DNA of 64,000 nucleotides from Takakia lepidozioides (taxonomy: Eukaryota > Plantae > Bryophyta): the NCBI GenBank assembly GCA_030704615.1, contig CM060731.1, forward strand, positions 8,742,001 to 8,806,000. Reading direction: 5' to 3'. Within the stretch, counting starts at the first letter, position 1, and the number at the start of each line of letters is the position of its first letter. The notes under the pieces were generated by a model. That model had not been told where the DNA came from. It saw only the letters and a program-made list of their open reading frames with translations, and made no database searches. The position numbers and the translations under genes are program-made. Shown here piece by piece: positions 5,681-32,084 of this stretch.

Positions 5681-6449
5681 CTAAATTGCCAAAAAAAAAA
5701 GAAAAAAAGTACACCCTATGAGATTTGAAAAAAAAAATGGCGTAATATAACGACTTTGGGAAGCGCCTGGATCTCATGGGAGAAAATGGATCTGAAGAAA
5801 ACATGAGAGAGGATAAAAAGTCAGACCACCAAATAAAAACTACGAGAAATGAAAATTGCTTAAAGTTTGAACAACGGAAAAGGACATGTGAAATTCCCTC
5901 TTAAACCAGGGCCAAAGATGAGAAGTATGAAAATGAGATGAAATAAAATTTTGGTGCAGAAAAGTCGTAGAGCTTAGAGGGAAAATGGAGGAAAACCTCA
6001 GAGAAAAAACTTCAGAACTGGCAAATTGAAAAGTATGTCAACAACGATTGGGTAAGGCTTCTCCTAGTGGGAGACTTCAGTGGGAGAATTGATTATGCGA
6101 AAAACAAGTTCAATCTTTGAAAGAAGGACTGGAAATGGGCTATTTTCTTTTGTTGTTAAAAACCTCTTTGACCGAATTTGAAGACTCCAGTGGTCGTGCC
6201 CGCCATTTTTGTTCTTATGATCTATATGTTATGTAGGCGAAACTCCCCCACAGGGTTTTCTTTGTTGACCAAAACGTACAGTAGGCCAGAATCCAGCACA
6301 CCAGAAACAAAGGACGAGAACGGCCACTGGACATTCGAGGTTCAGTGCGACATAAGAAGATAACAAAAAGGATCCCCCAACGCAAACAAGAAAGGCAATA
6401 TAGAGAAGAAAAAATTTATTTCTTAAATCGAAGTACTGGAGTTGACCTC

Positions 6450-7563
6450 AACAATATGTCCTTGGTCTGGAACTCGCTTTCTGACTGACGATTAGCCTCC
6501 TCCAAATTAGCGCGCGTCTTCACGCTTCGGCAACAGTAATTCTCTTGGTACTATTCCTTGTCGTATTTTTTCGTGGAGGCATTGTCCACACAACATTGTT
6601 CACTTAGATCCATTGAGGAGGATCTGACGAGTTATACTCGCAAAGTTTTGACCAACAGTCCCTGTACCTTTCCAAGTCTGTTGGGTTACCACATTTTCTC
6701 GGTCTCCACCACTCCACCTTCACCTTCTTAAAATTAGGATCCTCCTTTTCGTGGTTCACGTCAGATATTGCCACCCCCAACCAGACCGGGCATGTACTTG
6801 GGTCATGAGGGCGAACGAGCACAAAAAACCCTTTCTCAATATCCTTGAACAGATTCAAGAATATTCTTGGTCGCTCACACCTTGGGCCACAGTAAGGTTC
6901 TAGGATTTCATCCTCTTCTTCCACATCTTACACTATATGTGGATGGATTCCATCTTTGAGATGATTCTTGGACCAATTTGTTTTCGGCCAGAATCCCTCA
7001 AGCAGATGAATACGCTCGGGAGCTTCTGGAATTGGCTTATCCAGCTCGGCGAGAATGTTTCCCCAGTACTGGTCGTATTGTTCCATTCGACCTCTATAAT
7101 GATCATCAAGCATCATTCCTTTCGTCCAAAAATCCCTGTATTTTTTTATTCCATTCTTATTGAATGATTGTTTTTCGGAGAAGTCGTCCCCAACTCCCCA
7201 GATAGGTCTCATTGAAACGGCGTCTAGGTCTCCTACAGGGAGCTTGGGAGTCCCGTCAAGATTGGACTTCCATATCTTCATGCTATTGTTTGTTGGAAGC
7301 CAATCCGAATCAATAGCGGACTTCTTGTACTTCATGACGGGCCAACCCTCCGCATCCTTAAAAAAACGGAAGACGTGCATCTCCGAAATCCCGACCAACG
7401 CCTCCTTTCCATCCAGAATACAACCCTTTACAAAATTCTTGAAGTCGGGAACCTCCTGAATAATCTGTGGAATGAACTGCAGATCTTGCGAGGTCATAAA
7501 TGACCTCATCAAATCCGAAAGAATGTAGGTGCTTCGTTCTTTTAGCTTCTTCGAAAGGTAGCT
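6450..7563 (-). pseudogene. Sola-like transposase, C-terminal part
   Basis: SYLSKKLK...VPDFK...FRFFKD continues directly from GHTH.DIDGFFSY at 8612. In-frame stop at 6928-6930, followed by a beta-rich C-terminal domain (VLVRP...VWLG...VEWWRP). Confidence 0.85.
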
Positions 7564-7990
7564 TGTCGCGCACCTCACTTCGGTAAGCTCCCCTTCAAGT
7601 CATAGTTACTCGCTTTGATGCGCGCGCCTGACTCCCAACCTGGCCGCCGGGCCAACTCGGAGCTTCGGCTGCTCACCAGGACATAACGGTCCCCCTTCGC
7701 TCTCCCGAAAGACCCTCCACCTATTTGGGCCTAGTGGAATTCCTTTTGGTAGATGGCAGTCCGGAACAGCTCCCCACTCTTTGGTCGCTTTCCGGCTCGC
7801 TCGCTTACTTACTAGTTTTTGGACACCAACGGGCTTCCACCGTTCTCGGGGTTACTACTCCCCTTATATATACTTCTGTAGCTGTCCGCGGGGGTTTCAC
7901 AACCAGCCATGCCATTTTATGGTGAACCACCACGAAGACCCTCGACTCCCGGTGGTGAGTCGCGGTGAGTCTTGGCCCACTCACCACGGC
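7564..7990 (-). repeat. 3' part of the chromovirus 3' LTR, in opposite orientation to the rest of the element
   Basis: Reverse complement of 8849-9224. Ends ...GCGCGACA followed by TSD AGCTA (7559-7563, read on -). Confidence 0.93.
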
Positions 7991-8612
7991 TTTGATAAAC
8001 ATTTGAGGCACTAAGAGTCGTGCAGAAGACTGTACCATAGCTAGAGGAATGAGTCTGTTATGATTCCGGAGGAGCTTCTCTGTATTATTCACGACAAAAT
8101 TGATCATGGAAAACAGCTATTCCAAGGCTCTAGACTCCAAACAAGATGATTTCTGGATTTGGTCAGCTTCCAGTTTCACTAACGGGAATGGTCACGCACG
8201 GACACAGTGATGGAGCTTACGGTCAGTATTCTCTTGAATTCTGAAAGGGAAATTCAAACTTTACAATTGGTTCTTTGGCACATTGCCTGCGCCAGCTGGA
8301 GAAGCCAATCTGTCGCGAGTCCAGGAACATTTTCGATTACCGACTTCAAAACGAGTTTTTCGAATTACTTTTAAGAGGTAAATCGAGATGTTTGGATGCT
8401 CTTAAACCCGGCAGGCCGGAAGATAAACGTGGTGCTCGTCCACTTCCGAGAAGACTGTACTTGCAAATGGACAACTCCGCGAAGGACAATAAGAACAGAT
8501 GGATGCTTGCTTTTCTATCCCTCCCGACCGCCAAAGATGTTTTTGAAGAGATCCAGCTAGGGTTTCTAATGGTCGGACATACTCATAAGGACATCGACGG
8601 GTTCTTCAGCTA
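7991..8612 (+). pseudogene. Sola-like transposase catalytic core (inverted segment)
   Basis: HLRH*ESCRRLYH...CIIHDKID and LYLQMDNSAKDNKN...FLMVGHTHKDID motifs, with several stops and frameshifts. Confidence 0.88.
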
Positions 8613-9224
8613 TGTCGCGGCCCTTTGCCTTGAGGGCAGGGGGTCGGGACACATGAGGGGCTGCCCCTGTGGTGGGGGCAGCGGCAGCGGTAGGTATGTG
8701 GGGCTGAAGCACCCTTGAGTGCCCAAGGCACTCAGGGAAGCGGAGGCGCTCACTAGGTGGAGCCCCGCACATCGGGTTGCGGTGGGGGTGGCTCCACAAG
8801 GGGTGGTGGTAGCTTAGTGGGACTTAGTGGGGGTGGCATAGGACTCACGAGTCGAGGGTCTTCGTGGTGGTTCACCATAAAATGGCATGGCTGGTTGTGA
8901 AACCCCCGCGGACAGCTACAGAAGTATATATAAGAGTATAACGTAGTGAGAAAGCCCGTTGGTGTCCAAAAACTAGTGAGTAAGCGAGCGAGCCAGAAAG
9001 CGACCAAAGAGTGGGTAGCTGTTCCGGACTGCCATCTACCAAAAGGAATTCCACTAGGCCCAAATAGGTGGAGGGTCTTTCGGGAGAGCGAAGGGGGACC
9101 GTTATGTCCCGGTGAGCAGCCGAAGCTCCGAGTTGGCCCGGCGGCCAGGTTGGGAGTCAGGCGCGCGCATCAAAGCGAGTAACTATGACTTGAAGGGGAG
9201 CTTACCGAAGTGAGGTGCGCGACA
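8613..9224 (+). repeat. 5' LTR (612 bp)
   Basis: Starts TGTCGCG and ends CGCGACA. Preceded by AGCTA (8608-8612). TATATATAAG at ~8925. Confidence 0.95.
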
Positions 9225-9226
9225 CT

Positions 9227-9238
9227 TGGTATCAGAGC
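9227..9238 (+). promoter_or_regulatory. Primer-binding site (initiator tRNA-Met)
   Basis: TGGTATCAGAGC, 2 nt after the LTR end. Confidence 0.95.
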
Positions 9239-9279
9239 TTAGAGTTCAGTACGCGATCGTCCTTGGGATTGGCCTCATC

Positions 9280-12200
9280 ATGGGGTCGGGCAAGCCGAAG
9301 CGAAAGCGGAACGGCCCAAAAGATGATGATCCCGGTGAGCCCGATGGGGGCGGCGTGTCACTGAGGCGGCCGTTTGAGGAAGCGATGCATGTTTCCGAAA
9401 ACGAGGCCGCCCAAGAGCGGGAGGAATCCGAGGAGTCGGAGCCCGAGGAATCCTTGAGAGCTCCGACAAACCAGAGATGCCTCCCATGCCGGTAGCCTTT
9501 TGGGAAGGGTTGTTGGCGCAGTTTGGCGGGACGTTGAAAGACGTGTTGAAGGCGGCTAATGCCACTTCCGCTAAGGCAAAGTTTAAGGTGAAGCCTAAGG
9601 AACCCGACACCTTCGAGGGCGTCCGAAATTGGAAGGCACTCAACACCTGGCTCTTGGAGCTAGAGCAGTACTTTCGGGCGGCCAAGTTGAGTGACGAGGA
9701 TCGGGTGGAAGTGGCTCCCACCTATTTGAGGGGCTATGCTCAACAATGGTGGCGGAAACGCCTTCACGACCAAGGCCCAAGCCCGGAAACCTTGAACTGG
9801 AGTGGGTTCAAGAAATTGATGAAGAGACAGTTTGTGCCCCTCAACGCGTCCTGGCTTGCCCGGGACAAGATGAGGAATTTGAAGCAAACAGATGACATTC
9901 GGGGGTATGTCCAGGCTTTCAATGTGCTGTTGCTCGAAGTCGCGGACATGGCAGAACCAGAAATGGTCTTCAACTTTGTGGCGGGACTGGCCCCATGGGC
10001 CAGGCGGAAGTTGGAGGAGAAGCCACCCAAGACTTTGAACGAGGCAATTGAGAGGGCTGAATGTTTCTCGGATGTCCCTAGGGGTGAGAGACAAGGCCGT
10101 ACGGAGCTGATTCACAAGAAGACCCGGCGGGAAGGTGACTCCTTCCGACCGGAAAAGAAGTGGGATAGGCCACGCGGCGACAATGGCACGTGGAAATCGA
10201 AGGGAGGGCCTTCACATGTCAAGGCGGCACCCGGTGCTTCGAAAGGAAAAGCGGGTGGAGCGGCTTATGGCGGACAGAAGGCGACCTTTGATGGAGTGTG
10301 TTTCAATTGCGGGGAGCCCGGGCACATGGCCAAGAAGTGCACGAAGCCCCGGCAATTGAACATGACTCGGGCGACCACGGAGCTGTCGGAAGATACCATC
10401 AGTCGCTTGGTGGAAGCGGTGGTCGCCAGAACTTGCAAGGTAGGCAAATTTTCTTGTGAGTTGTATCAGGAAACTGGCGCCTTACAAAAAAGGAGTCAGT
10501 TATTGTTCGTGGATGGGATAATATCCGGAACTAATGTGTCGTTGTTGGTGGACACAGGAGCGTTGCACTCCTTCATGACACCGGCAACGGCACAAAAGCT
10601 GGGACTCCCGACAAGTGACGTGGGGGCCTCTATTGAGGTGCGTTCTGCCAAAGGAGAACCACAGTTGGCGACAAGGTTGGCGTTTGATGTTCCTCTTCAA
10701 CTGGGGAGTTGGGAGGGACGTGAGAACTTCACCATCTGCGGGATCGATGGAGTAGATCTCATTTTGGGGATGACCTTTTTGAGCAAATCCGGAGCGATCA
10801 TAGATGGCCGCAAGAGAGTAGTCACGCTGCCATGTGGGAATGGTGGCGAGGTCTTACGAGTGTCGGAAACGCCCAAATCCGTGGGAGGGCGAATAAACCT
10901 TCTGTCAGCGAGGGAGTGGGCCGTGGAGGAGGCACACGAACCCCAGTTTTTGCTTTACATTAGAGAAGTGAAGGGAGAAGGCGATGGGGAGCCGAGCCCA
11001 GATTGGATCAAGGGGATCTTGGAGAAATACCAGGATGTGATGCCGGAGGATTTACCAAGCGGCCTGCCACTGCGAAGAGGAGTTGACCACAAGATTGAGG
11101 TGATACCGGGATCGGAACCGCCTGCCCAGGCACCCTACCGGTTGAGCCACAGGGAGTTTGTCGAGCTGAAGACTCAGCTCAAGGATCTAATGTCAAAGCG
11201 GTACATCCGGCCGAGTAAGTCACCTTACGGAGCCCCGGTGCTATTCGCAGACAAGAAGGATGGAACGCTGCGGATGTGTGTCGATTACAGGGCTCTGAAT
11301 AAGGTGACTATCAAAAACCGGTACCCTTTGCCAAGGATCGACGACCTCTTCGATCGGTTGGCAGGAGCGAAGTATTTCAGCCGGATCGACTTGCGCTCCG
11401 GCTATCATCAAATTCGGGTGGCGGAAGGAGATGAGGAGAAGACCGCGTGCAGGACAAGGTATGGTTCATATGAGTTCTTGGTGATGCCTTTTGGGCTCAC
11501 TAATGCACCGGCAACCTTTAGCACGCTGATGAACAGCCTTTTTCAGGAGTGGCTGGATGACTTTGTGATCGTGTACATCGACGACATCTTGGTGTACTCG
11601 AAAACAAAGGAGGAACACCTGGAGCACCTCAAAAGGGTGTTCCAAAAGTTGCGAGAAGGGAAGCTGTATGCCAAAGCTTCAAAGTGCGAATTCGGGGTCA
11701 CGAAAGTGGAGTTCTTGGGGCATGTGATTACACAGGATGGGATCAAAATGGATGACAGAAAGGTGAGGTTGATCTTAGACTGGGAGCCTCCGACTTCGGT
11801 CCCGAGAGAACGTTCCTTCCTAGGACTCGCCTCCTATTACCGGAAGTATGTGAGAAATTTTGCCAAGATCGCGGGGCCGCTGTCGGACCTTCTGTGTAAA
11901 TCTAAAGTCTGGGCATGGAACACATTTTGTGGCCAAGCTTTTGCTGAATTGAAGCAGCGGATGGCGGAAGCTCCAGTCTTGAAAATCCCGGAGTTCGATC
12001 GTCCGTTCGAGATACATACAGATGCGTCGGACTTCGCGATTGGGGGTGTACTGATGCAAGATGGACATCCAGTGGCTTACGAAAGTAAGAAACTGAATGA
12101 AGTGGAGCGACGGTGGCCGACGCACGAGAAAGAGATGAAGGCGGTGGTGCACTGTCTTGAGCTCTGGCGCCACTATGTTGGTTCCAACCCAGTGAAGGTG

Positions 12201-13053
12201 TTCACGGACAATGTCACGGTGAAGTATTTTGCCACGCAGCCCAAGTTGTCCCCAAAACAACTTAGGTGACAAGATACTTTGGCGGTGTTCGACGTGGATA
12301 TCCAGTACAAACCGGGACGAGACAACGTGGTGGCCGATGCTTTAAGTAGAACGCAGCAGCTCTTGTTGGTGTACAAGGGCGAGACGGTGCTCCAAAGGAA
12401 GATCCGGAAGGCTTGCCGGAAGGATGAGCTGGCGAAGTCCATGATGCAGGACTTGAGAATGGGGGTTAAATCGCAATTCCACTTGCAAAATGGACTGCTC
12501 CGGTATAAGCAAAAGCGTCTCTACGTGTCGAAGGGAGGGATCAGAGATAGCCTCTTGAGAGAATGCCATGATAGCCCGCTTGCGGGCCACGGCGGAGCCA
12601 AGCGCACTGCGGCACTCTTGAAGAAAGAGTATTTCTGGCCCAAACTGAGGGAGGAGGCAGAGGAGTATGTCAAGACATGCACCACATGCCAACAAAACCG
12701 GAGCGAGTACAAAAAGCAAGCGGGGCTGTTACAACCCTTGCCGATTCCAGAGGAGACTTGGGAAAGTGGCTCGATGGATTTCATGACTGCTATGCCCGAA
12801 GGATATTGTCTCGGACCGCGATCCCAAGTTTACGAGTAAATTCTGGAGAGCACTTTGGAAAAAGATGGGGACGAGGCTGAAGATGAGCACCGCCTTCCGA
12901 CCTACGACCGACGGCCAAACAGAAAGAGTGAATTCCGTAGTGAAGCAGATCTTGCGGAATTACGTGTCGGCAGACCAAACAGACTGGGTGGAACACTTAG
13001 ACGCGGCAGAGTTCTGTTATAATAACACAGAACACTCCGCAATGGGAGTTACA
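9280..13053 (+). pseudogene. Gag-Pol polyprotein (gag, CCHC knuckle, aspartic protease, RT, RNase H, integrase N-terminus/core)
   Basis: [32 protein letters not shown] and the H-H-C-C zinc finger. Frameshift near 9460, stop at 12267-12269, integrase deletion near 12797. Confidence 0.95.
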
Positions 13054-13142
13054 ATATAAGTTTTTGCAATCGGATTCCTAAGCTAGCTAAAACCGGGCTA
13101 AGCATGCATTTCCTCCCCCACGCTCCAAGGTTGATGTCCCCA

Positions 13143-13787
13143 TCAACGCTTCTTCCGCTTTTTAGGTCGCCCTTCGAAAGCTGCAACCGCCTCGGATGCG
13201 TTTCCCATTTCTGAGGCACGCACCCAAGATGCCTCCACAAGATGATAGCCCTTCCATTTGACGAGATATTCCGTTTCTCGGTTCTTGAACCTCCTCGACT
13301 TAAGTATTGCCACCACCTCGTACTCAGGTTCATTTTCATGATCCAACAGCATAGGTGGCGGACGCAACACTTGATGCCGATTCAGGCGCGCTTCATCTTT
13401 GAAGTAAGGCTTCAAAAAGGAGACATGGAATACTGGGTGCACCTTGCTGTTTGCCGGTAGCTCCAATTCATACACATCCTCATTCATAACCTTCCGAATA
13501 CGAAAAGGTCCCGCATACGGAGGTACAAACTTCGGACTCACTTCCAGAGGTAGTCGGAAATTCTTGATGTTCAACCAGACCTCCGTGCCTGCCTCAAACT
13601 TCACTTCCCTCCGCTTCCGATTCGCCTGCCTTTCATACCGTTTCCTAGCTTTGGCAATGTTGTACTTTGCGAGCTTCAACAAACGCTCGCGTTCTTCCAG
13701 TACCGCCACTACTGCCGGTTCCTCAACGTCCTGGGCGGCCCAACTTGTCGGCACCAGAGGTGCTTTTCCATAGACCAATACGAAAGG
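13143..13787 (-). pseudogene. Integrase C-terminus (GPY/F) plus chromodomain, on an inverted segment
   Basis: PFVLVYGK...YAGPFRI...VHPVFHVS...EYEVVAILKSR...EYLVKWKGY. Confidence 0.93.
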
Positions 13788-14585
13788 ATGAAATGGATTC
13801 CAAATGTTGTGCGTCCTCTTTTGTTTGGAATGGTGATGCATGGTATGGTTGGCTAGTGTGTAGAATGCATGCTAGCTTATAAAAGTGGGAGAGGTAAATT
13901 GGGTTAATCGTGTGTTTGCGTAGTGCCGAAATCGGGTGACCCCCATCCAAGGGGCAAGGAAACTTGCGCCTTCTTTGGGAGTTCACGTGCTAGTGCGCAC
14001 CTGGCGCGTGCGCGTACTATAATTGCGCTACCGAGGGGGTTGCCTTGTAGTGCGGGCTAACGCGGAAGCTACGTGCTTCCGTTCACGTACTATAATCGTG
14101 TAGCCTCGGGACGAAGTCGTAGTGCGGCTTCGGCGTGTTCCCGTACCTTAGGCCAGCATTCCAAGGCGGACCCAATTGTAGTGATTGGGGCGCACGGTTG
14201 GTTCAAGGTTATCTTCCTAGTCAAAGAGGGTTCCAGGTGAACCCTTGCTCAAGGTGATGCCAAAAGCGGCATCATGAGCGATCGCAAGCAATGTTGTTGC
14301 CGTAAGGCGATTAGATCCTCGGGGAGGATCGTTCCTTGGCCTTGAAGTAGGCCAAGAAGAGTGCACTGGGAGGAGCTGGAGAGGCTCCACCCTTGGCCGG
14401 GACTTGGAGGAAGTCGGCCGAACTAGCTAGTGGAGAGTAGAGTCAAGTGTGGGGTTTGGTTCTTTGCCATGGGATGCCATGGTACAGAAACAAACTCCTT
14501 GATGTGGGACGCCACAACTTGGATGTTCGTTTATACAAAATGGACAAGTCGATGAGGACATCGACTCCCTGTTGGTAGGGGTGTG

Positions 14586-14865
14586 TGTCACGGCCCTTTG
14601 CCTTGAGGGCAGGGGGTCGGGACACATGAGGGGCTGCCCCTGTGGTGGGGGCAGCGGCAGCGGTAGGTATGGGGGGCTGAAGCACCCTTGAGTGCCCAAG
14701 GCACTCAGGGAAGCGGAGGCGCTCACTAGGTGGAGCCCCGCACACCGGGTTGCGGTGGGGGTGGCTCCACAAGGGGTGGTGGTAGCTTAGTGGGACTTAG
14801 TGGGGGTGGCATAGGACTCACCATGGGGTGGAGACCTCGTGGTGGGAGTCGTGGGGAGTCTTGGG
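14586..14865 (+). repeat. 5' (U3) part of the 3' LTR
   Basis: Matches 8613-8848 with few substitutions, followed by extra sequence absent from the 5' LTR. Confidence 0.93.
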
Positions 14866-14877
14866 ATGTGTGTCACA

Positions 14878-16213
14878 TGTTCCGCACTTCTCTTGACAGA
14901 CTTTTTGATCAGGTCCTTTAACATCTCACACTCCGTGCACTTCGCAAATGTGCTCCCAGTTTTACGAACCTCCACGTTAGGAAATATCCGATTCCGGATG
15001 TGGCTAACAGCCGACTGTGAGACTCCTTCCTACCCGAAAAGTTTGTTCGTCTGTTACAATAAGGAAGGGTCAGGAAAAGAACGTCCACTGGACAGTGGAG
15101 GTTCATGAAACTAGAACCATAGTCGAAAGAGACAAAATTGAAGGGAGGGTCATCCACATTGAATCAGAAAAAACTTCCAGGAATGAAATTGAAGAATGGA
15201 GATTTCATACCTCGTTGGACTCGTCTCGTATTCACTTCCAGTTCATTTCAGGTAATAAGACTTTCAAAGTATCCCTCCTTCCCTCCCCAATGCATCTTGT
15301 CTTATGGGGCATGAGGTCAGTATTTCCGTTAATAATGGGCATAATGTCACCCTCTGCCTGAAGCGTCTATGGGCGTGGCCTCTTCACTCCACGGTTCCCA
15401 TAGACTTGACAACCAATCCTGTTTACTCAACTTTTTGTACTTCATGTATGTGGACCTGCCAATTCCATGAATTGTCCACCAAGCAGTCTCACAAACATCT
15501 ACACCCTCAATCGTAACGTATGCCCTGCGAGAGGTCCCTTCCAGCATGTGAAGTCGTTTTGAAACATTTAGTCCATGTTCTCTCCTCTCATCGAAAGTGG
15601 ATCCCCAAAACGAAGTACGGATAGCCAAGGTTTTTCGCCAATCGAAATATTGACAGCAGTGAAATCTGCAGCAAGGTTTGTTGTTCACGGACCGGACTTC
15701 CTCCAGAGTAAAATTCTTCATTCTTTTTTTGGAGTGTTCCAAATCTCGATCCTTCTTCTTCCTCGTAAAATGCCGATACGCCATTTTTTTCACACCTGCC
15801 TCGTGATCTTCGTACAAGATACTTTCAGAAGATCTAATAAAATTCTCCAGATCATTTGAGTAGTCTCCCACTTTCCAAAAGTCGTGTTTTTATTAAAGGC
15901 CATTTTACAAGAGACATCAAAGATCCAGATCCTCCAGAAAGTATTCTGGTGACAAGAACTCCGACATCGTCCCCTCCCAGTTTGTCATTGAGGATCAACT
16001 CGTCCAGAATGCAGGCTTGAATCCTCCCCTCAAACAGTGCACCCCCATCATCACCCAACAGTACGCACTGTAAGTTTCTCCAGTTGTTTTTTCCAAGTCC
16101 TCCGCTCGGATTCTTGGAACTCTTCGATGGTATGTGGTTTGATTCATCCTCGTCGACGTTAGAATTTTTGGCAGTATACCTTCTCTTCGGCGTAAAACAG
16201 GATTCATGTCATG
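14878..16213 (-). pseudogene. Sola-like transposase N-terminal/central part, with an intron at ~15052-15210
   Basis: PCCRFHCCQYF...RTSFW...VCETAWWTIHGI...FAKCTECEMLK and a GT...AG intron. Confidence 0.85.
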
Positions 16214-16439
16214 CCCTCCTTGGGGGCTGCTATTTCATGAGCGGCATGAGCATGAGCGGGAAAAAAAAAAGCATGAGCAGACCATTGTGAGTCCACGGAA
16301 AATAGGGTTAGGAGGCAAGGAAATAGGGTCATGTTAAGTTGGAATGTGGCACCAGTGGACTTGAAATGCAACATTTTATTGCAAATTTTGTGGCAAGCCA
16401 CGTCTATACAAGTGTGTTCTAACTGTCATAGCCGGAATG

Positions 16440-20157: not shown

Positions 20158-20240
20158 ATTATTGTTTTTATTGTTTTTTATTGTTTTTTTTATTGTTTTT
20201 TTAATTGTTTTTTTAATTGTTTTTTATTGTTTTTTATTTT
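20158..20240. repeat. T-rich microsatellite (TTTTTTATTG)n
   Basis: Directly visible. Confidence 0.9.
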
Positions 20241-20340
20241 CGAAATTTGTACTTCTGCTCATGAAAACCGATTGTCTTACTACTCCGCTCATGCCGCTCA
20301 TGCCGCTCATGCTCATGAAATAGCTAACCTCCCCTCCTTG

Positions 20341-20616
20341 ATACTCGTTATTCTCCGCATGAACTTCGCCAACATTCCACACCACCGGGGTCCCAATGGC
20401 CTCCTTCAAGGTGTTAGTATCCATATGTCCATAAGGAAGAGGACATAATGAGTTTGCTTCATCACAGGAGATGAGAACCACTGAAATGGTTGAGGAAGAT
20501 AATTGGTGTCCATGACAGGTCCCAACCCCGGAGACATTAAGGCAGTCCCCAGTTGCTACTGGAGATGAAGACCCGGGAAGAGTAAGAAACACTCTTTGAC
20601 CAGTCTCTAAGCTCAT
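20341..20616 (-). pseudogene. Sola-like transposase N-terminal exon with a Tnp1/En/Spm-like small beta domain
   Basis: MSLETGQRVFL...VATG...TCHGHQL...PLPY...TLKEAIGTPVVW. Interrupted by the MULE at the TSD. Confidence 0.7.
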
Positions 20617-21316
20617 GATCACCGGAACCTCCACTGCACACGCGAGGTTCAAGAAACTGAAAACCCCTCCGTAACTCACAGTAATAAGCAGTATGAGTTA
20701 AAACTCTATTCAGAGATGAATCAATACAAAAAAGGAAATACCCTCGCGTATGAACGTTAAGTAGAATAGAAATGGAATTACTGTTTGGTCTGGAACATGT
20801 CATGTGAAGATTGAGTCTAATTATATAACCTCCACTGTACAGTGGAGGTTGCATGAGATACAGATGAAAAAAGTCAGACGGATGAATACTAGTGGATGAA
20901 TATGGTTACGTGGATGAATAATTGTAATGACGGATGAATGTGAGCATTGACGCGACTGTCCAGTGGAGGTCCACGACTTGATGGATGACGGAATATGGAA
21001 ATGGGAGAGACAGACAAATACAGCGAAATGAGAGTATTGGACTGTAATTTCTAAACGTGTAGATGAGAAATAAGTAGATTTTCCTGTAGATTATCAAAAA
21101 CACACAGATGTCATCACATTTCCTACGGGAGAAAATGAAGTTCACACGAGAGATTATGGAAATTCAGAGAGGCACACATGCGATGGCCACAGAGGTACAA
21201 GATACTCAGAGAGGGGCACTATGGGCAGTGAGGTGGGAGATGACTAGAGAGGTGCGGGAAACACAATCTGCAAGTGAGAGGTATGGAGATAGAAGTTTGA
21301 ACAGTTTGCACTCAGA

Positions 21317-22050
21317 CCTTATATAGAGGTGGAAACTAGGTTGCCCGCTGGAACCCCTCCAATGGGATAGTGCGATACATTGTCTCGCGGATCGATTTCC
21401 GGCGCCCACAATCGGACGGTTCTAGATGGTGCAGGAGTGCACTCTTTGAGTGATTTCGGAAATGAGTGTCATTTACTGGTAGAACCCTATGTCACAATTA
21501 TGATGCCAGAACGATAACGGCTGATAACGGTGGTTCAATGGTTTCGTACTCATGCTTATAAAGCAGTACGTATTTCGCATTCAATGTTGTCCAAGTGTAT
21601 CAAGGCTTGACGCCGTTGATAAGCGTTTTCATGAAATCGTGCAGCTATGACACTCGGCCGAGAATGCGGCGGGCGTAAATGAGTGAGAGATGAAATATTC
21701 CACGCCTTAATCCGCCGAATGTAGACATTGTCAGGAGCAATAATTCCAAGCGGCAAAACACCGCAGTAGGGTCTGACTGATACGATAAATAATTTATCGT
21801 CATGTGTGGGGTGTGGGAAATATCCCGCGGGGTTATAATTGTTGATCAAGTGTAAGGGATCATTAAAGTCATATTTTCTCATTCATTCATCCTTTTTTTC
21901 ATTTCATCTAATCATTCGTCAAATGGATGGACAAAATGGAAATGATGAATTGGATGATATTTGCATGGATGTTGGATGGAACACGTGCGACCGTTTGATT
22001 TCGAAAGGACGTGATGGTTCAGATCCTCTGCGACCGCACCATATAAGGGG
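21317..22050. promoter_or_regulatory. Putative bidirectional promoter of the large element
   Basis: TATA-like TATATAAGG on - (~21317-21325) and CATATAAGG on + (~22040). Each is followed by a purine- or pyrimidine-rich 5' UTR. GACGGT/ACCGT motifs lie upstream of both. Confidence 0.55.
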
Positions 22051-22334
22051 TGCGCTCATTCGGCACACCCTTTCGGCACTCCATTGTGTACGCGGAAGTG
22101 GTAAGAGAGACGAGCGCTAGAAAAGAGACAATTTTGTAGAGGGGAGAGCGTGCTGTTAGAGGAGAGAGAAGAGAGCATGCAGTTCAGTGCAGTGTGAGAA
22201 TGTACTGGAGGGAAGCGGAGCAGACAACGGATTCAAGCGCAGACAGGAGACGGGAGAGAAGCAGAGCGGAGGGGAGAGCAAAGCGGTGGAAGCTTAAGGG
22301 TCAGGCGTTTCAGGTCATCAACAGGGGCACCGAT

Positions 22335-25300
22335 ATGGCTCAGGCATCCAACAGGTAATCTTTTTGTTTACTGTTTCTCTCAGGTTCGATGTGATTCTCT
22401 CTGGCTCGCACTGGCTTGTTTTGTTTTGCAGGTTTGTTGTTCTTATGCTGTTTCAGTTTGTTCCTATGCTTGTTGATTTGTTTGTTGATTTGCTTTTGTT
22501 TTTGTTTTGCTGTTGCTTTTGTTTTACTGCTTGTTGGTCAGCATCGCCTACGTCGTTGTAGGTTTGCTTCTGTTGCTTTCGTTCCATTTGTTTCTAGCAT
22601 GTTACGTTTCGTGAGTGTGCTGTCTTGTCTGATGCGGAGCATCTCATTTGTATTCATTGGTTCCAAAGTTGTTTCAACTAGTTTGAAATGATTAAAGCTG
22701 TTTAGGTGTTTCAATTCATTGATGCTTCTCTTCTGGTGGTTTGTATGGTGGTATGTAAGGGTGGTTTGTGGTCCTGGTTTAATGGTGCTGCTGGATTATT
22801 AGGGTTATGGATTAGGGTTATGACGGGTTAGGATCATGGTTTTGTGTGATTGGTTTTTCAAAATTTTGATATTTGAAAACGGGTTTTTCTTCGAGCCTAG
22901 GCTACTCTAGTAGACTAGTCTCTGTAGACCACTAGACCTCTAGTAGACCTCCATAAACTCTGGTAGGACAATCCACACGAACCTCGCCTGCCTAGTGGAG
23001 GTTCCTGCGTGTTACTATGCCAAGGCACAACATAAGGATGTATTGAGATAGACTTATGTCGGTGCCTCCTCTGCGTTGATTTTTTGTTCTGTCAGTATAA
23101 AAAGAATGTGCGTAGGAGTGCACACGGTGGCCAAAGATGGTTCTGAGACCGTCGTCGACATCTATAAGAGGCCAAGGAGACATAATCCAGTAAACATCAA
23201 CGAAGCAGAAAACCAAGACGCATTACTGGTTTTGTCGAAAACAAAAACCTTCAAGAAGAGATTTGAGAATCAAATTTCAGATGTGGGCTCTGACGTGCGA
23301 ACCTTCATAAATCCGGGCACTGACGAATCAATGTTTGAGGGAGTTATTCGACGGGAGACAACGGAGGAAACCAAGGAAGAGAAAGATGAAAGTGATGAGT
23401 GCAATCTTCAGTCTGATTCAGATAATCACATTTCTGTAGGAGATAGTGAATAGTCCCTGGGACCCGTCCTTCCGTCCTCTCCTGGATACAGTCCTGACTC
23501 TCCGCAATATCCAGTATCTGTCCTTGTAATTTCTCTAGAATATGTCGCCGCTGATTCTCTAGGATACGTCCCTGCAGATTCTCCTCAGTACGTCCCTGAT
23601 GATTCTCTAGAATTCATCTCTGGAGATTCTCCGACATATACCCATAGAGAGTACTCCCCTGAAACCCTCAGGATGATTCGAGAGAGTTTCCTATAGTTAT
23701 TGTAGATATAAGAAAATGAAGGGATGAACCTCATCTTACAAGAATATATCGAGTTCTTGTAGATATTAGGTATTCGTTATTCGCACAATTTTGAGACCGC
23801 ATGATGTATGGAATGGCGAGACGAGCCTTCTCTGAATAAATGTTTTTTTCTTCTTATGAGTGAAATCTTTTTTTCCTCCTAAATTGAATTCTTTTATCTG
23901 TCAACTATGAGCGTGTGAAGTGGTGAACCTCCACTGTAATGTCCTAGGAGTTTTGTATGGTTGTTATGATATGTGTCTGACGACAGAGGTGGTTTGTTCT
24001 GTGGACATCAACATCACCCCCATGGATTGTATTGTTGGAATGTGCAAACCTATCTGTGGTTCATTTGTTTCTCGAAAATCTCCGAATTTCAATCACCTGG
24101 CAATTTTTGAGCTCAACCCGGAAATCACAGAATGGGGCAATGTCCCCGTTGAAACACCTCCGGACCATAAGTTCCGGTTCCACTACAAGATTGGTGCAGA
24201 GGTTGCCGAGCTCAAATATGCAGATGTGGTCGAGAAAGAGCTGGAGATAGAGGTGGAATTTCCGATGCTGGTAATTTTCATGGTGGAAGATGGTAGATTT
24301 CCCAGAACGTTTGGCTTCAAACTGGAGGTACGACTTCTAAGGAAGGCCATGATGAGAGAGTCCATTCGGGCGGGGTTCACATATTGCGACGAGGGTACTC
24401 AATTTACAGATGAAGGTTTTTGCATGGCTTGGGGTATTTTCTTGGATGTGCTTTACTTAAAGGGTAAGGAGATTGCAAAGACGCGGGAGGAGGAGGCTGC
24501 GAGAGCGCGGCCAAGGAAGGGAAAACGGAAATCCACTGACGCCGGTGGTGATGAGAATGAAGCCGGAACATCAGGGGGAAAGAAGAAACAAAAGGAGGAG
24601 ATGGATCCCGCTTTCATGACAGATCACAAGAAACCCAAGGCTGCAGACATCTTCGACAAAGAGAAGTGTGAGAAGATGCAGGAGAGGCTGGAGCAAGACT
24701 ACAAGGACATGTTTCCTTTTGGGTTTGAGGCGACCCGGGACGTCAAAGTTTCCATGATGGAGCTTGCTCCCAGGGATATGGTGTACAGGCCCCTAAATGT
24801 TAAGCACAAAGACGAAGTCAAAGCGCGTCTTTACCAGCTCCGGGTGTTCGACTCCAAACATCCAGTTTATTTGATTCCCGCAAACCCCGAGAAGCCTATG
24901 GAGGTTTCTAGTTCGAAACCTCGAAACTGGAAGGAGGTGGAAAAGTCCAGATTCTTCGTCATCGGTGGACAACACACAATCATTGTTGCCAAGGTAAATT
25001 TCTCAACAAAATCCAATTTTTGTAACAACATGATCCTCCACTGGACAGTGGAGGTTCATGAACTTTAAACAACATGTTTGTTAGGTCGATATCATTTCTG
25101 ACCTTATTCAATTCTGTCGCAGGAACTTGTGCAAGACGTGGACGACGACAATCTTAAGAAGTACTACATTGACTGGCCCTCAAAGATTATATGGTCAAAG
25201 GATCTGATGAGGCTCGTGAAGTTATCTAAGCTCCTAAACGACCCGAATAAGGCGCAAAAATTTGACACAATATTTCCCGAGAAAGTTGCACATGCCCGAA

Positions 25301-28300
25301 ATTTCTTCGAGCTGAGGGGGAGGCCGAAAAAGTACAACGATCACACAACAAAGTCGGAGACTAGACAATGGAAGATAAATGATTCATTGTGTTTTTTGTT
25401 CATTTTGCTAGAGAACCAAAATATTTTCAAGCTCGGATTTAATGTGACGAACGGAGACCGCATTACGAAGCAGGAGAAACTACAAAAAGAGCTTCAAAAG
25501 GGAGGGTGCTACAATGAACGAGCGGGATGGTTCAGCATTCAGAAATTCGACATGATGAGGTCTTTTGTAATGTGTCTTGTTTGGTAATGAGATGCTTGTC
25601 CAGCTCTTCTTTTCCCAATCTATTTATGTTCTCCACCTGGAATAGTTCCGCAAATGTGCCGCAAAAATACTTGAAACATCATATGATCATGAAAACGTGA
25701 TGTTGCGGAGAACGCTTCCAAAAGTTTTCATGGTCATTGGGTTTTTCAAGGATTTTCTAGGCACACTATTGGAACTGTTCCTGGTGGAGAACATGAACAG
25801 ATTGGACAAATTTAACTTAGAGGAGCACCGCATTCCGAAGCAGGAGACACTACAGAAAGAGCTTCAAATTACAAGGCACAACAAGGTGGACGGAGATGAA
25901 TTGGCAATCGAATCATCATTTGGAGTATAGTATAATTGATATGATAGTTGTGACTTTTGTTTCATCTCATAAATCAAATATCAAATATCGAATGAAATGT
26001 CTAATTTTGGCCTTGATCATTTTCGCAGGAATTTATGCAAGCATGTCAACTCATACTGGAGATGAGTAGCATGAAGGAGGCCATGGTTCTGGTTCTCTGT
26101 GACGAAGACGTATGGAACCTGTGGGAGGAAGTGTTCAAACAGTGGGAACAAGGAAAGTTTATTGATATTTTTGGGATTCAATGCAAGGGTGAACAGCTAC
26201 TGCTACATAAAACCGCTATCGCGAAACTGCAAAGACTTAATAGCAGGCAGTTGAAAAGAGTGGCGGAGAAAATCCTCAATAGGGACATTTGCATTCGGGG
26301 AACGAAATTCAAGGGCGCGGACAAATCCAAAAATACAATGAGCGCGTATATTGACCAAATGAAATTGCGATGGTTTATTATCGACGATGTAATGGAAGTC
26401 TTAGGGTGGTCTCAGAGGAGCAAGCAGAACCCGGAACCGTATACCAAACATGAGTGGCGTAATGTGAAAAAAAAAAAATACAACTTCAACAAAGCTGAGT
26501 TTGAAACTTTTCGAGATCGGCTCGGGAACGACTACATTGTAAGCAAACAGAAGTTGAATATGGAGACGCAGCCAATGACTGCTGCCTTCATAAAATATGT
26601 CTTGTTGTGGATAGCCAGAATGCCCTAGTGATTCTACGTACGAGCTTCAGGTCCCATTACACACAGCTGGGGGGGAACCAAAAATTTGTTGATGCAAGAT
26701 CACAGTTGGGACTTGCACCGAAGAAACGGTTCGACGACATATCGATGGTGTTCGTCAATACAGTTTGTGATGATGACTATGTTGTCTTCAAGGCAAAGGA
26801 CTACTCCAATATCCTTGATGCTTTTGTGGCTCGGAAGCTCATGTCGAGTGCTTTTGTGTTTTTATCGACACAAGAAGCTGCACGACTATATTCTCCTAGA
26901 CAGTCCTCTGCCTCGACTACGTATTTCCGGCAACAGCTGAGGACATGGTGAATCCGGACGATCACATTCAAACTGTTTTGTTAACCCCGGACCCAATTAA
27001 TCCCGTTATCCAAGGGCCAGATGTAGACCCGACCTCGCAGGAGAATGAGTGCAGGACTTACACTCATGAGCTGAGGGCGGACACCTACGATTACCTGGGT
27101 TTTTTTTTTTGCAGGGACGGGATGTCTTATGTGAACGTTTTCGGAGGAGTGGCAATGACATACGTTCTGCTTGTAAGTGGATTTTGTTTCGTTTTGGAAT
27201 TGTCTGTGTTTGTAGTTTGCCGGATTTAACTTTCCTATTTTTTCTACGTTGTCGGAATAGGGTGTTTAACCAGTGTCTGTTTTTTTCTATTGTTAACCTC
27301 CACTGGACAGTGGAGGTTCATGTTACTGGAATTCTGGGTGTTTTGGGTGTTTGTTATTCAGGAGTTTGGTGTGTTTGCTAGTTGTCTAAAAAGAAAGCCT
27401 AACCCTTTCAATCTTTCGATGGTTGCAGTTCAGCGGATTTATTTTGATTTCATTGTTTGGTTTCATTGCAGGAAAGAAATATTTGTGTGCTTGATATAAA
27501 CTATATAACGAATTTTTTTTTTTGTAGAAGCAAGGTGGAGCTTATTTGAAGACGCTCCAGATTGACAATCAGACTATCGCAGGAGACGGAGATGACGGAG
27601 ATGACGGAGACTCACTGCAGGATGACAAAGTGGACGAAGAAGAGGATGGCGAAGGACACGACAAGGAGCAGGACGAGGAAATGGAGGAGAAACAAGAACA
27701 AGACGAGGAGGAGGAGAAAGACGAACATGAAGACGAAGATGAGAACATGGAAATCGTCACCGAAGACCAGGTGCAGATGCGACTGATGTGGGAAAGGGAA
27801 AGAGAGGGCCTGAAATTTTTTGGGTTAGATAAACTAGGTAGTACTCCAAATACCCAAGAACGCGTTGCGCCACAAAGTGTACACAATCTGGACAGCTCTT
27901 CCTCCAGTTTCAATAACACCACGAATCAAAATCCGGCTTCTCCAGGGGGACAAGAAGCGACATCGACGGAGTTAGTTGAAACCTTCGGTCAAGGGTTCAC
28001 ACATGTGGAAGGTGACGAGCCATTGATTATGTCACCGGATCCCGCCCTCCGGATCAGTAGTGAGTCGAAGTATTGAAGGCTTTTCGAGGGTTCACGATGG
28101 TGCTCAAATTGAGGGTGGATCCTCAGTCAGACCCTTCTCCTCTCGGGAAGCGGGCAACACTCTTCTCCTCTCGGGTCCTCCTGGGTGTAAAGTCCAAGGT
28201 GCAGGTGAAGAACAGAAATATCCCAGAAACTTTATCGACCTTTCCCAACATTCCTCACCTTCCCCGTTCAGTACGCAGGGTCTGGTCTATCCAACCCGCA

Positions 28301-30385
28301 GGGCAACCGTCGGGGACTCGGCTACGGCTCCGCTGTACCTTGTTCCGTCTCTTCCTCGCATATCTCCCCAGCACGAGGGTTGGACAGCCCAAATATGCAA
28401 ACTCATTTCTCGCTCTTTGCTCATTCTCCTAGTTTCACTTAGTTTGGGATCTGATATTCATCTGTCGCTCCAAGTCAGAACATCTGCAGATTATGACCTT
28501 CCAGTCAAACGACGTCTGCATTGGAATGCAGTTTCGAGATAAATTATTCCTTCGTTGCGTTTTCATTCCATCCAGGATGTCGAGTGCTCAAGAGATAATT
28601 TTCTGTGCTTGCATGTTGTTGCCCCTCCACTCCCTCCGTCGTTCAATGGCAAAACATCTCTAACATCGACACAGCCTGACCCTGAACTGGTGGCACATGT
28701 TCTGCACCAAAGAGGCGAAAAAGAGCCCCCGAGCCATTTCCTTCCTCTGCAGGAAATCTCTCCAATGGACAAAAGGCTGACAAGAAAAAAAGAGCAGACT
28801 CCAAACGCATGAGGACTCCCTCGGATGTTGTGGCACCTCGTCAATCCAAGCCCGCGGGAATCCACTGTTCCTCTGCGAACCTTCAATGGTAAATTTCAAA
28901 ACCATTTCTCCACTTTCGTTTGCAGTTTGTTTTGCGGTCCCAAACTAACTCCGTAATTTTTATACAAGCAAGTATGGAGCCGCAGAACTTCTTGAATGCG
29001 CCTCCGGACATGGTGCGTCCACTAACCTCCACTTGATAGCCGACGTTCATCTTTTCATGATCTCGAACTCTTCAATATATCGTCTACTCTTGGTCCTTTA
29101 CAGTAGTCCATTGTCGGGACACTTATGTCTCGGCAAACGTAGAGGTCACTCTGAAACGAAGAAACACTACATCGTGTTGTTTCTGACGGCGGGAACACTT
29201 AAATTCATTTCCTTAAATTGCGCAGGATGGCATCGTCCATCAACCTTCATCTGCCACATCGGGGAAGAGGAAACGGATGTTGTTATTGAGTGTCAACGGA
29301 CTCCTCTGCTACCGGCCACCTCCAACCGGCGGTGAATTGTTTAAGGAGAGATTTCGTTTCAGGAAAGTTACAGTTCATGTTCCCGACAGACCTTTTGTGG
29401 TTCCCCGGCCTGGAGTCTTGGAGTTTCTCAACCTTGCGTTGATGCAATTTCACGTGGCAATTTGGTTAATGTGCTGAAAGAGATGTTCTTTGTAGGATGC
29501 TCGAGTGCTTAGTTGCAATTGCGAAGAAGTTTTGCTTCATCTGGTTAGCTGAGGATTGCAAAGACACTACCGGTTATATCATGCCTGGGATGATATCTCG
29601 TTAAGGATATTCGCACTGTTCTTGCCAAGTACCCTGGTACACCCTTTGCAACGCAAGGACAAATACTCCTTGTCAATGATGAGCCATCAAAAGGCCTCAG
29701 AAACCCACCAAATATTGGATTCTTCCATATTTCATACAAGCCATCACCAAAGGGCTTGGTTGACCAGGATGATATGACAAAGGCTGTGTGGCCATATATA
29801 TTGAAAATGGCTGCAGCTTCAACAGTCGTAGATTACATTAGTGAGAACCCTGCCAAGTGTTCTCGTAAGCCTATTGGTTGCGACCACGCCTATTGGGCTT
29901 GCTATAGAAGATATGTTGATCCTTGTGTTTGGATCCCACAACAAAAGGAACCTGATTACCTTGATATGTACTTATCCCATTGTTTGTTGTTTATGGAGAA
30001 TTTGATCTTGAAAGTGTCTTCCACTTGCACTTTTATCTTATCATTTCTTCTACAAATGTTCCACATTTCAGCTGACATTTGTCATATGAAAAATTGTTTT
30101 GCCCAGTCACATTCAAGTAGCGAATTCGTAAAGAAAAAGAAGAGTTTCGTGAATGGCAAGAATGGCGGGCTTCCCGGCAGGCTTCAAGGGCATCAAAAGA
30201 TTCAACAAGTAGAGTTCCAAGTAACATTTCGGATGATAATGTTACTACTAGGTTCGAGTTCTCCGAAAGTATTTCCGTTTCCTCTGGTGCGGAGACCGGT
30301 GGTTGTGGTAACCGGAGGTGTCTTCAAACATATGCCTTGACTGCGAGCCGTTTGGGAGGAGGCTCTGTAATATTAATGGGTTAGT
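22335..30385 (+). pseudogene. Multi-exon accessory gene: ParB/Srx-like, MTase-like fold, acidic tract and FCP1/NIF-type HAD phosphatase-like domain (may be more than one gene)
   Basis: Exons at ~23988-24993, 25123-25374, 26029-27172, from 27472, ~29226-29967 and ~30106-30385. Motifs RPLN...FVIGGQH; FCRDG.SYVNVFGG...LL|ERNICVLDIN; LLLSVNGLL...RPGVLEFL...FHVAIW...LLVNDEPSK..RNPP. Confidence 0.7.
23106..23696 (+). pseudogene. Small acidic protein with C-terminal Pol II CTD-like repeats (197 codons, one internal stop)
   Basis: Reading through TAG at 23451-23453 gives SPGYSPDSPQY...SLEYVAADSLGYVPADSPQYVPDDSLEFISGDSPTY...EYSPE. AATAAA at ~23835. Confidence 0.6.
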
Positions 30386-32084
30386 GTAAGCCGTTGTATG
30401 GCTTCGAGCTGCTGAATAACATTAAGTCCAACGGATGTACAGTTGACGTTACATTATGTTTGACTGCAACGCCAAAGTTGCAATCTCTAATAAAATATGA
30501 ATGTTTATCATCAATGTATGCGGACTCATTCTTTCATGTCATCCTCTTCATCACATGCCATGATTGTTCTATGTTTGGTTTTGTACGTCATCTAATTATG
30601 GCAACCATTTTGTGCAAAAAGTTTTACATATCTGACCTTACATCATGGTGTAATTTATTGCATCCTCCCATTTTTTTCATGAACGTCAACTTGGCAGTGG
30701 ATGTTCTTCTAAAACCACAATACATACTTATATTGTCTCCAAAAAATGTTTGGAGGATTATTGTTCATGGTTATATTGTGCATAAAATAGCCAAATAATC
30801 ATATATATCACTTTATTTCAATAATAAATTTTATTTATTCATATTTCTCATATTATTTCTGAACCAAACAAAAGTCCAGAATTAGTTAAAATAATGTTAT
30901 AACATTGATTGGGGACTAGGACCAAGGAGTAGATATAAGTTTTGCCCCTATCCAAGTCAATGAAAATCAACTACCAAAATGCTCATCATTCGGTAGTCGT
31001 CATAAAATTAACATCTAACGTTCATCATCCAATTGAAAATACCCCTGCATATAGATTACTTCTCAATTTTATCATATGTATACGTATATACATTTTAATT
31101 ATAAAAACCCCTTAAATAATTGATATAATTTAATATTTGTAGAAATAATATACCTATCTATGTAGGTGTTTTTAATATTATTATCAACCATTTGGGGCAA
31201 CTGTGGAAGAGTGACTTGAGATGGCGCAAGACAGCAAGAAATGTAGGAGGAAAATATAATGTGTCCTTAACCAGTGCAACGAAAAAAAATGATTGTTTGT
31301 AATGAACATCAAATCCGCAAACCCTCAGTCCACAAATATATGTACCAATTATCACTATACTATACCTACTTCTTGTAATATTAACCCCAAAATATGTATA
31401 TAAACAGATTTTTTTCATACCCTGTCATGTATGTATATAATGTTACATATGGGGATAATTAAAAATACCCCTTCAGTACACTCAGGTGGCTGGGATAGGA
31501 TTGGTCAGCGCACCCCCCCCCCCCCCCCAGGATTTAGCAAAAGGGCAACAACTTCTCTTCTTCATAGAATTGTTGACTTGATGAGGAGACCTCTTCCCCG
31601 CCAAAAAGAAAACATTTAGATTTTGGCCCCCTTGTTTGGTCGTCAATAAGCAAAGTGGAAATCAGATTTTGGTATGGTTTCAAACAATGGAATGTAGTTT
31701 ACTTGTAGTGGCATCAAAGCCTCCATATGCTTGTTACTATCGTATCAATATTTTTGATCAAGTGCGCAAGTAATATCAATATACACCGATTTTTAAAACA
31801 AAAATACTAGACCAGTATTGATAAGGCCCTGTTATCAGTTTTTCAAAATTCTTGCTATTGATACCACTAAATACCTGGCATAATAAAGTTATCGTTAAGT
31901 CGAGGGGATGCGTGGTGACTCGTTTGGCCAGTTTGGCCAAAAAATAGGATGAACGTCCATGAATATCCAAAGAGTAGGCCCAGAAAGTACAAGCGAAAAA
32001 TATATTGAAGATCAACTCAAAATAATAGGAAAAAATAGCTCAAACGCGTTTTATCCCGTTACCCTCCACGCTTGCCGCTAGGCC

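Follow-up and report, generated by a model that had tools for sequence, protein, structure and literature searches.

A decayed, probably two-gene transposon of Takakia lepidozioides with a DUF7869 transposase, an accessory gene of predicted ParB/Srx fold and family-specific palindromes

Layout of the locus and the DUF7869 transposase

A 64,000-nucleotide stretch of the Takakia lepidozioides genome (contig CM060731.1, forward strand, positions 8,742,001 to 8,806,000; hereafter the window) contains, between positions 6319 and 30898, a decayed copy of a two-gene transposon with terminal inverted repeats (TIRs), which was later hit by a Mutator-like element (MULE), a long terminal repeat (LTR) retroelement and an inversion (Table 1). 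A transposase gene on the minus strand stands head-to-head with a single multi-exon accessory gene on the plus strand. Once the nested transposable elements (TEs) are removed, the element measures 13,868 bp (~13.5 kb in a preliminary description of this DNA); the right end, placed there at 30500, is moved by a TIR to 30898. Both genes carry several stops and frameshifts, and therefore this copy is non-autonomous; the preliminary description had proposed an autonomous family. Leaving any mechanism aside, we regard this anatomy as highly probable.

The spliced and interrupted genes of the window were compared piece by piece. The transposase gene has its start codon at 20616, a single intron at ~15030-15205 and its end near 6520; the preliminary description had the same start but extended the gene to ~6450, whereas homology runs only to about 6520. 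Positions 54-112 of the DUF7869 model (PF25273) fall on 8245-8613 (+; Pfam E 1.1e-25) and positions 112-190 on 6931-7563 (-; Pfam E 1.7e-4), and the domain resumes exactly across the retroelement. With a score of 90.8 bits against a curated cut-off of 26, the protein belongs to this family, which we take to be linked to Sola1. The pieces are colinear with the nearly intact genes of relatives on long plant contigs (L016, L017, L018, L098, L099 and L100; 31-56% identity), confirming the earlier proposal that removal of the insertions and reversal of the inversion restore one transposase. Identity reaches 47-63% to 11 homologs in the catalytic core, 38-47% to L016 in the middle part and 31-42% to the relatives in the 3' part, and the 5' end matched Transposase_23 with a Pfam E of 0.01, which is under the cut-off.

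PDB sequence searches were blank, no kin of the transposase were found in viral contigs, and ten ORFs of the window had no entry in the protein collection. A word-index protein search gave no match for 6931-7563 or for 23959-24993 of the accessory gene, and its length limit makes it uninformative on longer relatives. In the window (8570-8600) and in most close homologs (P0064-P0070), the GHTHED motif appears as GHTHKD, a prevalence that may be partly a search bias. A conserved C-terminal domain (window 6607-6927, -; L016 11180-11605) contains invariant Trp and Cys residues and is possibly a small beta-barrel; Pfam and PDB gave no match to it.

Pfam identified gag, protease, reverse transcriptase, RNase H, integrase zinc finger and chromo domains in the retroelement, whose outer ends are both flanked by AGCTA, a 5-bp target-site duplication (TSD). 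Its second LTR is in two parts: the first 236 bp lie at 14586-14821 (+; 99% identical to 8613-8848 of LTR1) and the remainder is inverted at 7564-7948, because the 6.9-kb segment 7949-14821 was inverted. The MULE-like insert is flanked by a 9-bp TSD at 16214-16222 and 20332-20340. At the inversion junction inside the transposase (14822-14870 and 7949-7990) there are ~75 extra bp with short GACTC/GAGTC repeats, and the small hairpin of this junction is also present at the LTR breakpoint. The retroelement's integrase end and chromodomain (13146-13841) run on the strand opposite to that of gag-pol, which constitutes a second, internal inversion. Older, fragmented kin of the retroelement (66-82% identity) lie at 47200-51200, and decayed kin of the MULE-like transposase (44% identity) at 32150-32680.

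Table 1 Features of the element and of the insertions nested in it, in window coordinates.
Feature	Position	Strand	Remarks
Palindrome	6319..6342	.	Downstream of transposase; leave-one-out score 26 against shuffle maxima of 6-19
Transposase, 3' part	6520..7563	-	Second half of DUF7869 and conserved C-terminal domain; stops, frameshift near end
Retroelement LTR2, 3' part	7564..7948	-	Outside the inversion; 95% inverted match to 8849-9224
Transposase, catalytic core	7949..8612	+	Flipped by the inversion; IIHDK, QMDN..DNKN and GHTHKD motifs
Chromovirus-type Ty3 LTR retrotransposon, nested	8613..14821	+	LTR1 8613-9224; chromo piece 13146-13841 internally reversed
Transposase, middle	14822..16222	-	N-terminal repeat domain, Cys-rich region, intron ~15030-15205, F.KC..C motif
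Palindrome	15080..15103	.	In transposase intron, which in relatives holds a motif of theirs
MULE-like element, nested	16223..20331	+	SWIM finger, short TIRs, 74-bp subterminal repeats
Transposase, 5' end	20332..20616	-	Start codon 20616; weak Transposase_23-like match
Divergent intergenic region	20617..22334	.	1.7 kb; three palindrome copies; TIR absent
Three palindromes	20626..20971	.	At 20626, 20827 and 20948; upstream of transposase
Accessory gene, probable first exon	22335..22354	+	ATG; phase-2 donor at 22355; in frame with acceptor 23095
Palindrome	22980..23003	.	Accessory intron 1; half site also at 23926
Accessory gene, probable second exon ('CTD-like ORF')	23096..23695	+	Low-complexity 8-residue S/P/Y repeats; in-frame stop 23451
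Accessory gene, exons	23987..25374	+	N-terminal region, basic linker, predicted ParB/Srx-fold domain ~24640-25330
Palindrome	25033..25056	.	Intron splitting the ParB domain
Helical region, then class-beta amino-methyltransferase-like region	26029..27172	+	Frameshifted; DPPY-type motif absent
Palindrome	27295..27318	.	Intron after methyltransferase-like region
Acidic, Ser/Pro-rich low-complexity region	27528..28888	+	Same position in L001 and L006
Palindrome	29024..29047	.	Intron before NIF domain
NIF/FCP1-like HAD domain	29262..29920	+	Two frameshifted pieces
Palindrome	30682..30705	.	Downstream of accessory gene
Right TIR	30869..30898	-	Motif common to related elements; outer flank ATAA

Domains of the accessory gene

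The accessory gene encodes, in order, a ParB/Srx fold, a helical region, a methyltransferase (MTase)-like fold, an acidic spacer and a NIF-type HAD domain. Pfam found nothing on the window's own accessory pieces. A full HMMER scan with 23959-24993 yielded 21 homologs, every one matching its last 120-170 residues, and the contigs of these homologs keep the order of the window: the ParB-type domain comes first, then the helical and MTase-like region, the acidic region and, last, a Pfam NIF domain. The L006 copy of the gene is nearly intact. Three phase-0 introns lie at identical places in the window and its relatives; one intron splits the ParB domain (24994-25122), another, common to the window and its relatives, follows MTase motif I, and the donor at 25375 is broken.

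For the N-terminal domain, the AlphaFold2 model of homolog P0021, which aligns with the window pieces, had a pLDDT >90 over the ParB/Srx domain. Because Foldseek ranked ParB first (E 6e-4), followed by Noc, ParB-CTP, PadC, sulfiredoxin and KorB, this domain is predicted to be a ParB/Srx fold, which supports the ParB-like assignment made earlier. The helical part of the window matched its relatives with z values of 8-10.

The MTase-like region of relative L001 had N6_N4_Mtase as its sole Pfam match (weak, E 0.04-0.08) and a DNA methyltransferase as its sole PHROG match (weak, E 0.1), and a low-confidence model of it placed CcrM (E 0.01), METTL14, MTA9 and Mod on top in Foldseek. These weak matches agree with one another and tentatively suggest a class-beta MTase-like fold, as had been proposed, but the (D/S/N)PP(Y/F) motif of DPPY/SPPY-type catalysis is absent in the window, L001 and L006, and the S-adenosylmethionine (SAM)-binding motif is degenerate and differs from copy to copy.

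An FCP1-like domain, also part of the preliminary description, is supported by the Pfam NIF matches of L001 and L006 (E 1e-15) and by the window pieces, which match the profile of the relatives in order (hhalign E 1.7e-5 and 4.3e-5). HAD motif I is DLNGVL in the relatives and SVNGLL in the window, where the first aspartate is lost; the DxDx(T/V) catalytic motif of FCP1/SCP is thus absent in both (DLNGV and SVNGL). In AT-rich accessory copies (L009 16600-18700, L011 14900-17300 and L012 15200-16500), two or three tandem NIF-like domains stand at the end.

The open reading frame (ORF) described earlier as resembling the C-terminal domain (CTD) of RNA polymerase II did not hold up as such. After one or two heptad-like units it continues in 8-residue repeats, the Pfam Rpb1 repeat was matched with an E of 0.1, below the cut-off, and no counterpart exists in the relatives, and a Pol II CTD mimic was rejected. 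Sharing its frame with exon 1 of the plus-strand gene, this ORF probably forms part of the accessory gene as an exon.

Termini, palindromes and related elements

A 30-bp TIR motif built around the core TTTAACTAATTATGGAC occurs as inverted pairs in the relatives (L011, L016, L017 and L100). Three TIR-bounded units of 280-330 bp have matched 4-bp flanks (GTAT, ATAT and AAGT) and the palindromic dyad of their family inside; for these reasons they were identified as derivatives resembling miniature inverted-repeat TEs (MITEs), and they define the TIR and a 4-bp TSD. The units in L016 and L017 may represent one ancestral insertion. The TIR closes transposase units ~0.8 kb after the stop in L016, L017 and L099. 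In L011, L012 and the window it is found ~1 kb past the accessory gene, and an accessory-only unit of 15.6 kb (L011 2903-18510) has it at either end, so that one TIR is common to units of both kinds. In the window, the right TIR scored 23.6 with a matrix trained without window sequences, against a shuffle maximum of ~10. No left TIR survives in 1-6400, and a direct k-mer search between the two window ends found none, the motif emerging only from the relatives. The window retains only the right TIR.

The left flank of the element (4784-5621) shows inverted similarity, rich in telomere-like repeats, to 45003-45469, upstream of a decayed Replitron HUH gene (43812-44883, -; Pfam E 8e-9); this region may have replaced the missing left end or may belong to it. 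A second copy of the 30-bp TIR at 45871-45900, 1 kb upstream of the HUH gene, suggests that the Replitron is nested with another member of the DUF7869 group. Replitrons have been reported in liverworts, mosses, lycophytes and ferns, and not in hornworts or seed plants (PMC10288648); on this distribution alone, the host would probably be a non-seed land plant or a streptophyte alga. An origin of the terminal motif as a Replitron end is disfavoured, because Replitrons have short direct terminal repeats (PMC10288648) and the motif forms inverted pairs with 4-bp TSDs.

With Sola, the element has in common a cut-and-paste type transposase, TIRs of ~30 bp and, in the MITE-like relatives, a 4-bp TSD. 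Of the flanks of the three MITE-like units, ATAT fits the AWWT target preference of Sola1 (PMC3845634), whereas GTAT and AAGT do not. Unlike Sola, the element measures ~14 kb, has a further large gene and contains internal dyads specific to each family. Sola elements are rare in plants (PMC12973397), and on the features compared here membership in Sola is consistent but unproven.

Ten clear copies of a 24-bp palindrome, AACCTCCACTG-nn-CAGTGGAGGTT, are spread over 6319-30705, while the nested TEs and the other 50 kb of the window are free of it, confirming that an element-specific palindrome is present on both arms. A cross-scan counted 11 sites in the 13.9 kb of the element against 0 in the 50 kb outside. 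Six matches were found at <=3 mismatches, against 0 in 100 shuffles. The exact palindrome is absent from viral and metagenome collections, and the relatives lack it and carry dyads of their own: L016, L017, L099 and L100 use the half-site GTATCGGCGG, L018 uses a variant of it, L098 has a GGATCC-centred dyad, L006 the half-site TTATCMTTGA, and the AT-rich contigs a GTGGCCAC-centred dyad. These family dyads are 18-24 bp long and lie in MITEs and, for both kinds of gene, in promoters and introns. The window, L016, L018, L019, L043, L098 and L100 all have a copy in one and the same intron of the transposase, so that the position of the motif is kept while its sequence changes among families.

Cross-scanning linked transposase and accessory genes at separate loci. 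The GTGGCCAC class joins the transposases of L019 and L043 to the accessory loci L007, L009, L011 and L012, and the TTATCC class joins the second transposase of L099 to the accessory genes of L006 and L016, against a background of 0-4 hits over 311 kb of distant transposase contigs, most of which are non-plant-like. Dyads are dense in accessory genes, with up to 41 in L011; L003 has only degenerate ones. In 5/6 families, the left and right arms are no more complementary than arms taken from different sites, and such independent variation fits half-sites of a dimeric protein. RNA or single-stranded DNA hairpins are disfavoured on the same ground, one family giving a p of 0.02. The family dyad is also imposed on coding sequence (L016 7943-8335; L006 4959), and in the L016 transposase this produces repeated GIGGPPI peptides.

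The preliminary description proposed a family in which transposase and accessory gene are paired head-to-head. A family of elements of ~14 kb combining a Sola-like transposase and an accessory gene is supported, whereas the head-to-head layout was found only in the window and in none of ~7 other transposase and 8 accessory loci. Transposases without an accessory gene in their flanks (L017, L098, L099 and L100), accessory genes without a transposase (L009, L011 and L012) and MITE units exist alongside the window pair, and therefore the group looks modular. The layout in the window could also be explained by a transposase unit and an accessory unit of one family that landed side by side, with no two-gene element at all. 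Such units do cluster, since in L016 a transposase unit is followed by a same-strand accessory unit with a different motif and in L099 two transposases lie tail to tail, and the window lacks a left TIR and TSD, in addition to the restriction of the pair to the window. Against this explanation, the two arms have the same motif, no TIR or TSD separates the genes across a divergent gap of just 1.7 kb, and the sole TIR faces inward over both genes; we consider it improbable, and the two genes of the window probably form one element. In trees built from single-exon stretches, with short fragments left out, both window genes were nearer to the AT-rich contigs than to the L016/L006 group, without firm support. 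The accessory gene might alternatively be cargo, part of another type of TE such as CACTA, or a host gene, given that a decayed copy in L003/L004 is convergent with a CACTA transposase (L003 12947-19046; Transposase_21 and DUF4218). This possibility appears very unlikely, as the many copies are decayed and non-syntenic and have their TIR and dyad classes in common with DUF7869 transposases; a single-copy syntenic host gene, one of the outcomes that would have spoken against the original proposal, is not what was found.

Other features were observed around the element and its relatives. A repeat unit with 110-118-bp tandem repeats is duplicated in the window (1288-3007 and 36634-37686; 85-91%), and 34884-38567 and 52400-58700 hold CpG-poor, probable host genes that by eye resemble a GDSL lipase and a leucine-rich repeat (LRR)/F-box gene. 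L016 contains a 73-bp tandem array between its transposase and accessory units (12506-13524) and a palindromic satellite of 262-283 bp that truncates the accessory gene (17135-19131). The L017 contig also carries an LRR receptor kinase, and L098 a further transposase-like ORF pair (1-2736) that is P-element-like by eye and without a match in Pfam. The AT-rich contigs may, at a guess, come from peat moss.

Possible role of the accessory protein

By analogy with VANC, we propose that the accessory protein recognises the dyads of its family and keeps cognate copies active, a reading to which we give an even chance. The protein would dimerise and bind the family dyad in the way that ParB, Noc and KorB bind palindromic sites, and would perhaps spread along the element from there; cognate copies, the transposase-only ones included, would thereby be marked both in cis and in trans. 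The impaired MTase-like and FCP1-like modules, together with the acidic region, would provide surfaces that bind nucleic acids or proteins and keep the element open and transcribed. Such a system would work like VANC or TnpA while being built from unrelated, partly bacterial parts. The proposal is favoured by the predicted ParB fold, the conserved domain order and phase-0 introns, the presence of the dyad on both arms, its confinement to the element, the motif classes that link separate transposase and accessory loci, the constant position of a motif whose sequence changes, the independent variation of its two arms and the TIR common to accessory and transposase units. A more specific form of it, in which a bacterial ParB/parS-type device was taken over, so that a ParB-fold protein loads at the parS-like palindromes of its family, spreads and, with the pseudo-methyltransferase and CTD-phosphatase-like modules it brings along, guards against silencing, with protein and site co-diverging in each family, is tentative and on the unlikely side.

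Several observations weigh against dyad recognition by the accessory protein. The GxxR motif is absent, every aligned sequence reading G-Q-H and then I, S, T, M or Q, and since its arginine is replaced, CTP clamping is doubtful; the upstream box-I arginine and a later asparagine are retained in the best-preserved copies. The region after the ParB-fold domain is predicted to be helical, but its model has a pLDDT of 34 and no helix-turn-helix is demonstrated. L001 has a full accessory gene, yet its 6.8 kb are free of dyads, which on the other hand also occur in transposase-only families and MITEs; no accessory gene with the exact motif of L016/L017, L018 or L098 was found, and the congruence between transposase and accessory gene trees is weak. 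CpG content is uninformative (0.72-0.89 in the element, 0.79-0.82 in the nested TEs) and was rejected as a sign of escape from methylation, because the nested TEs look alike.

The presence of the dyad in six of the plant transposase loci with usable flanks, also where no accessory gene is nearby, and inside the TIRs of MITEs would suit the main alternative explanation, namely that the dyads are binding sites of the transposase, serving transpososome assembly or self-activation, and that the accessory protein is a MURB-like partner in excision, integration or targeting. The transposase has a long N-terminal region without assigned domains, and a transposase alone has been reported to activate cognate copies (10.64898/2026.08.24.746577). 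This explanation fits less well with sites that are buried in introns and coding sequence, a long way from the ends, and are dense in accessory genes, with the palindrome binding of the best-known members of the accessory protein's fold, and with a transposase core that is conserved (~55%) while motifs and accessory proteins diverge strongly (~25-43%); we see it as possible, though rather unlikely. The preliminary description had the accessory proteins act on methylation or Pol II regulation, and an active DNA amino-methyltransferase (6mA/4mC) or CTD phosphatase that writes or removes marks on the element would accord with the class-beta MTase resemblance, the Pfam NIF domain and the ParB-MTase fusions known in phages, some algae and chytrids (PMC4738411). 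Since the DPPY/SPPY-type motif is lacking in the window, L001 and L006, the SAM motif is degenerate and HAD motif I is DLNG or SVNG instead of DxDxT, active methylation or dephosphorylation is unlikely, and we regard this last alternative as scarcely credible. The analogy to VANC made in the same description is strengthened by the family-specific non-coding motifs.

Comparison with known systems places dyad recognition by the accessory protein in context. VANC21 binds family-specific non-coding motifs (PMC5735166), and VANDAL/VANC (a MULE system) and Spm/TnpA resemble the present system in having a TE-borne accessory gene and short, family-specific non-coding motifs that change between related families. 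They differ in transposase superfamily and in having 8-10-bp motifs in direct arrays instead of the 18-24-bp dyads found here, and no sequence match of the accessory protein to VANC or TnpA was seen in Pfam. With ParB, Noc, KorB and BisD, the accessory protein has in common the predicted N-terminal ParB/Srx fold, a helical region after it and palindromic sites scattered over the element. KorB and BisD act as regulators of the mobile elements that carry them, BisD being a ParB-like clamp that activates ICEclc (10.1101/2024.09.16.613209). In contrast to these, the accessory gene is eukaryotic and intron-containing, lacks the GxxR arginine and a ParA, and encodes a protein fused to MTase-like and HAD domains, and the dyads are candidate sites.

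ParB-fused N6A methylases occur in chlorophytes, chytrids and phage ParB-terminase loci, and DIRS1 elements carry inactive MTase domains (PMC4738411). The former resemble the accessory protein in that a ParB-type module adjoins an amino-MTase, and DIRS1 in the loss of catalytic residues from a TE-borne MTase domain; here, a ParB/Srx nucleotide-binding fold is combined with a class-beta-like fold and NIF in a land-plant DNA transposon. The relatives agree with the DLNG-type subgroup of the FCP1/SCP (NIF) HAD family in their Pfam NIF matches and their DLNGVL and LLIDD motifs, and differ in that the NIF domain is fused at the end of a TE protein, without DxDxT and, in the window copy, without the first aspartate. 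By these tests, the accessory system falls outside the VANC and canonical ParB families as well as those of active MTases and of FCP1, and its VANC-like working is what we infer by analogy.

Sequence-specific counter-silencing by transposons is known from a few flowering-plant systems (VANC and TnpA). The literature searched, which included few subscription papers and excluded Repbase, contained no mention of DUF7869 or of a ParB-fold accessory gene in plant transposons. The most surprising part of our findings is the combination of family-specific dyads common to both gene types with a protein of predicted ParB fold, a pointer to a possible independent solution to counter-silencing in a little-studied superfamily and in non-seed plants. 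The families with different dyads would form a natural panel of protein-site pairs for the study of specificity and may offer orthogonal tools for chromatin targeting.

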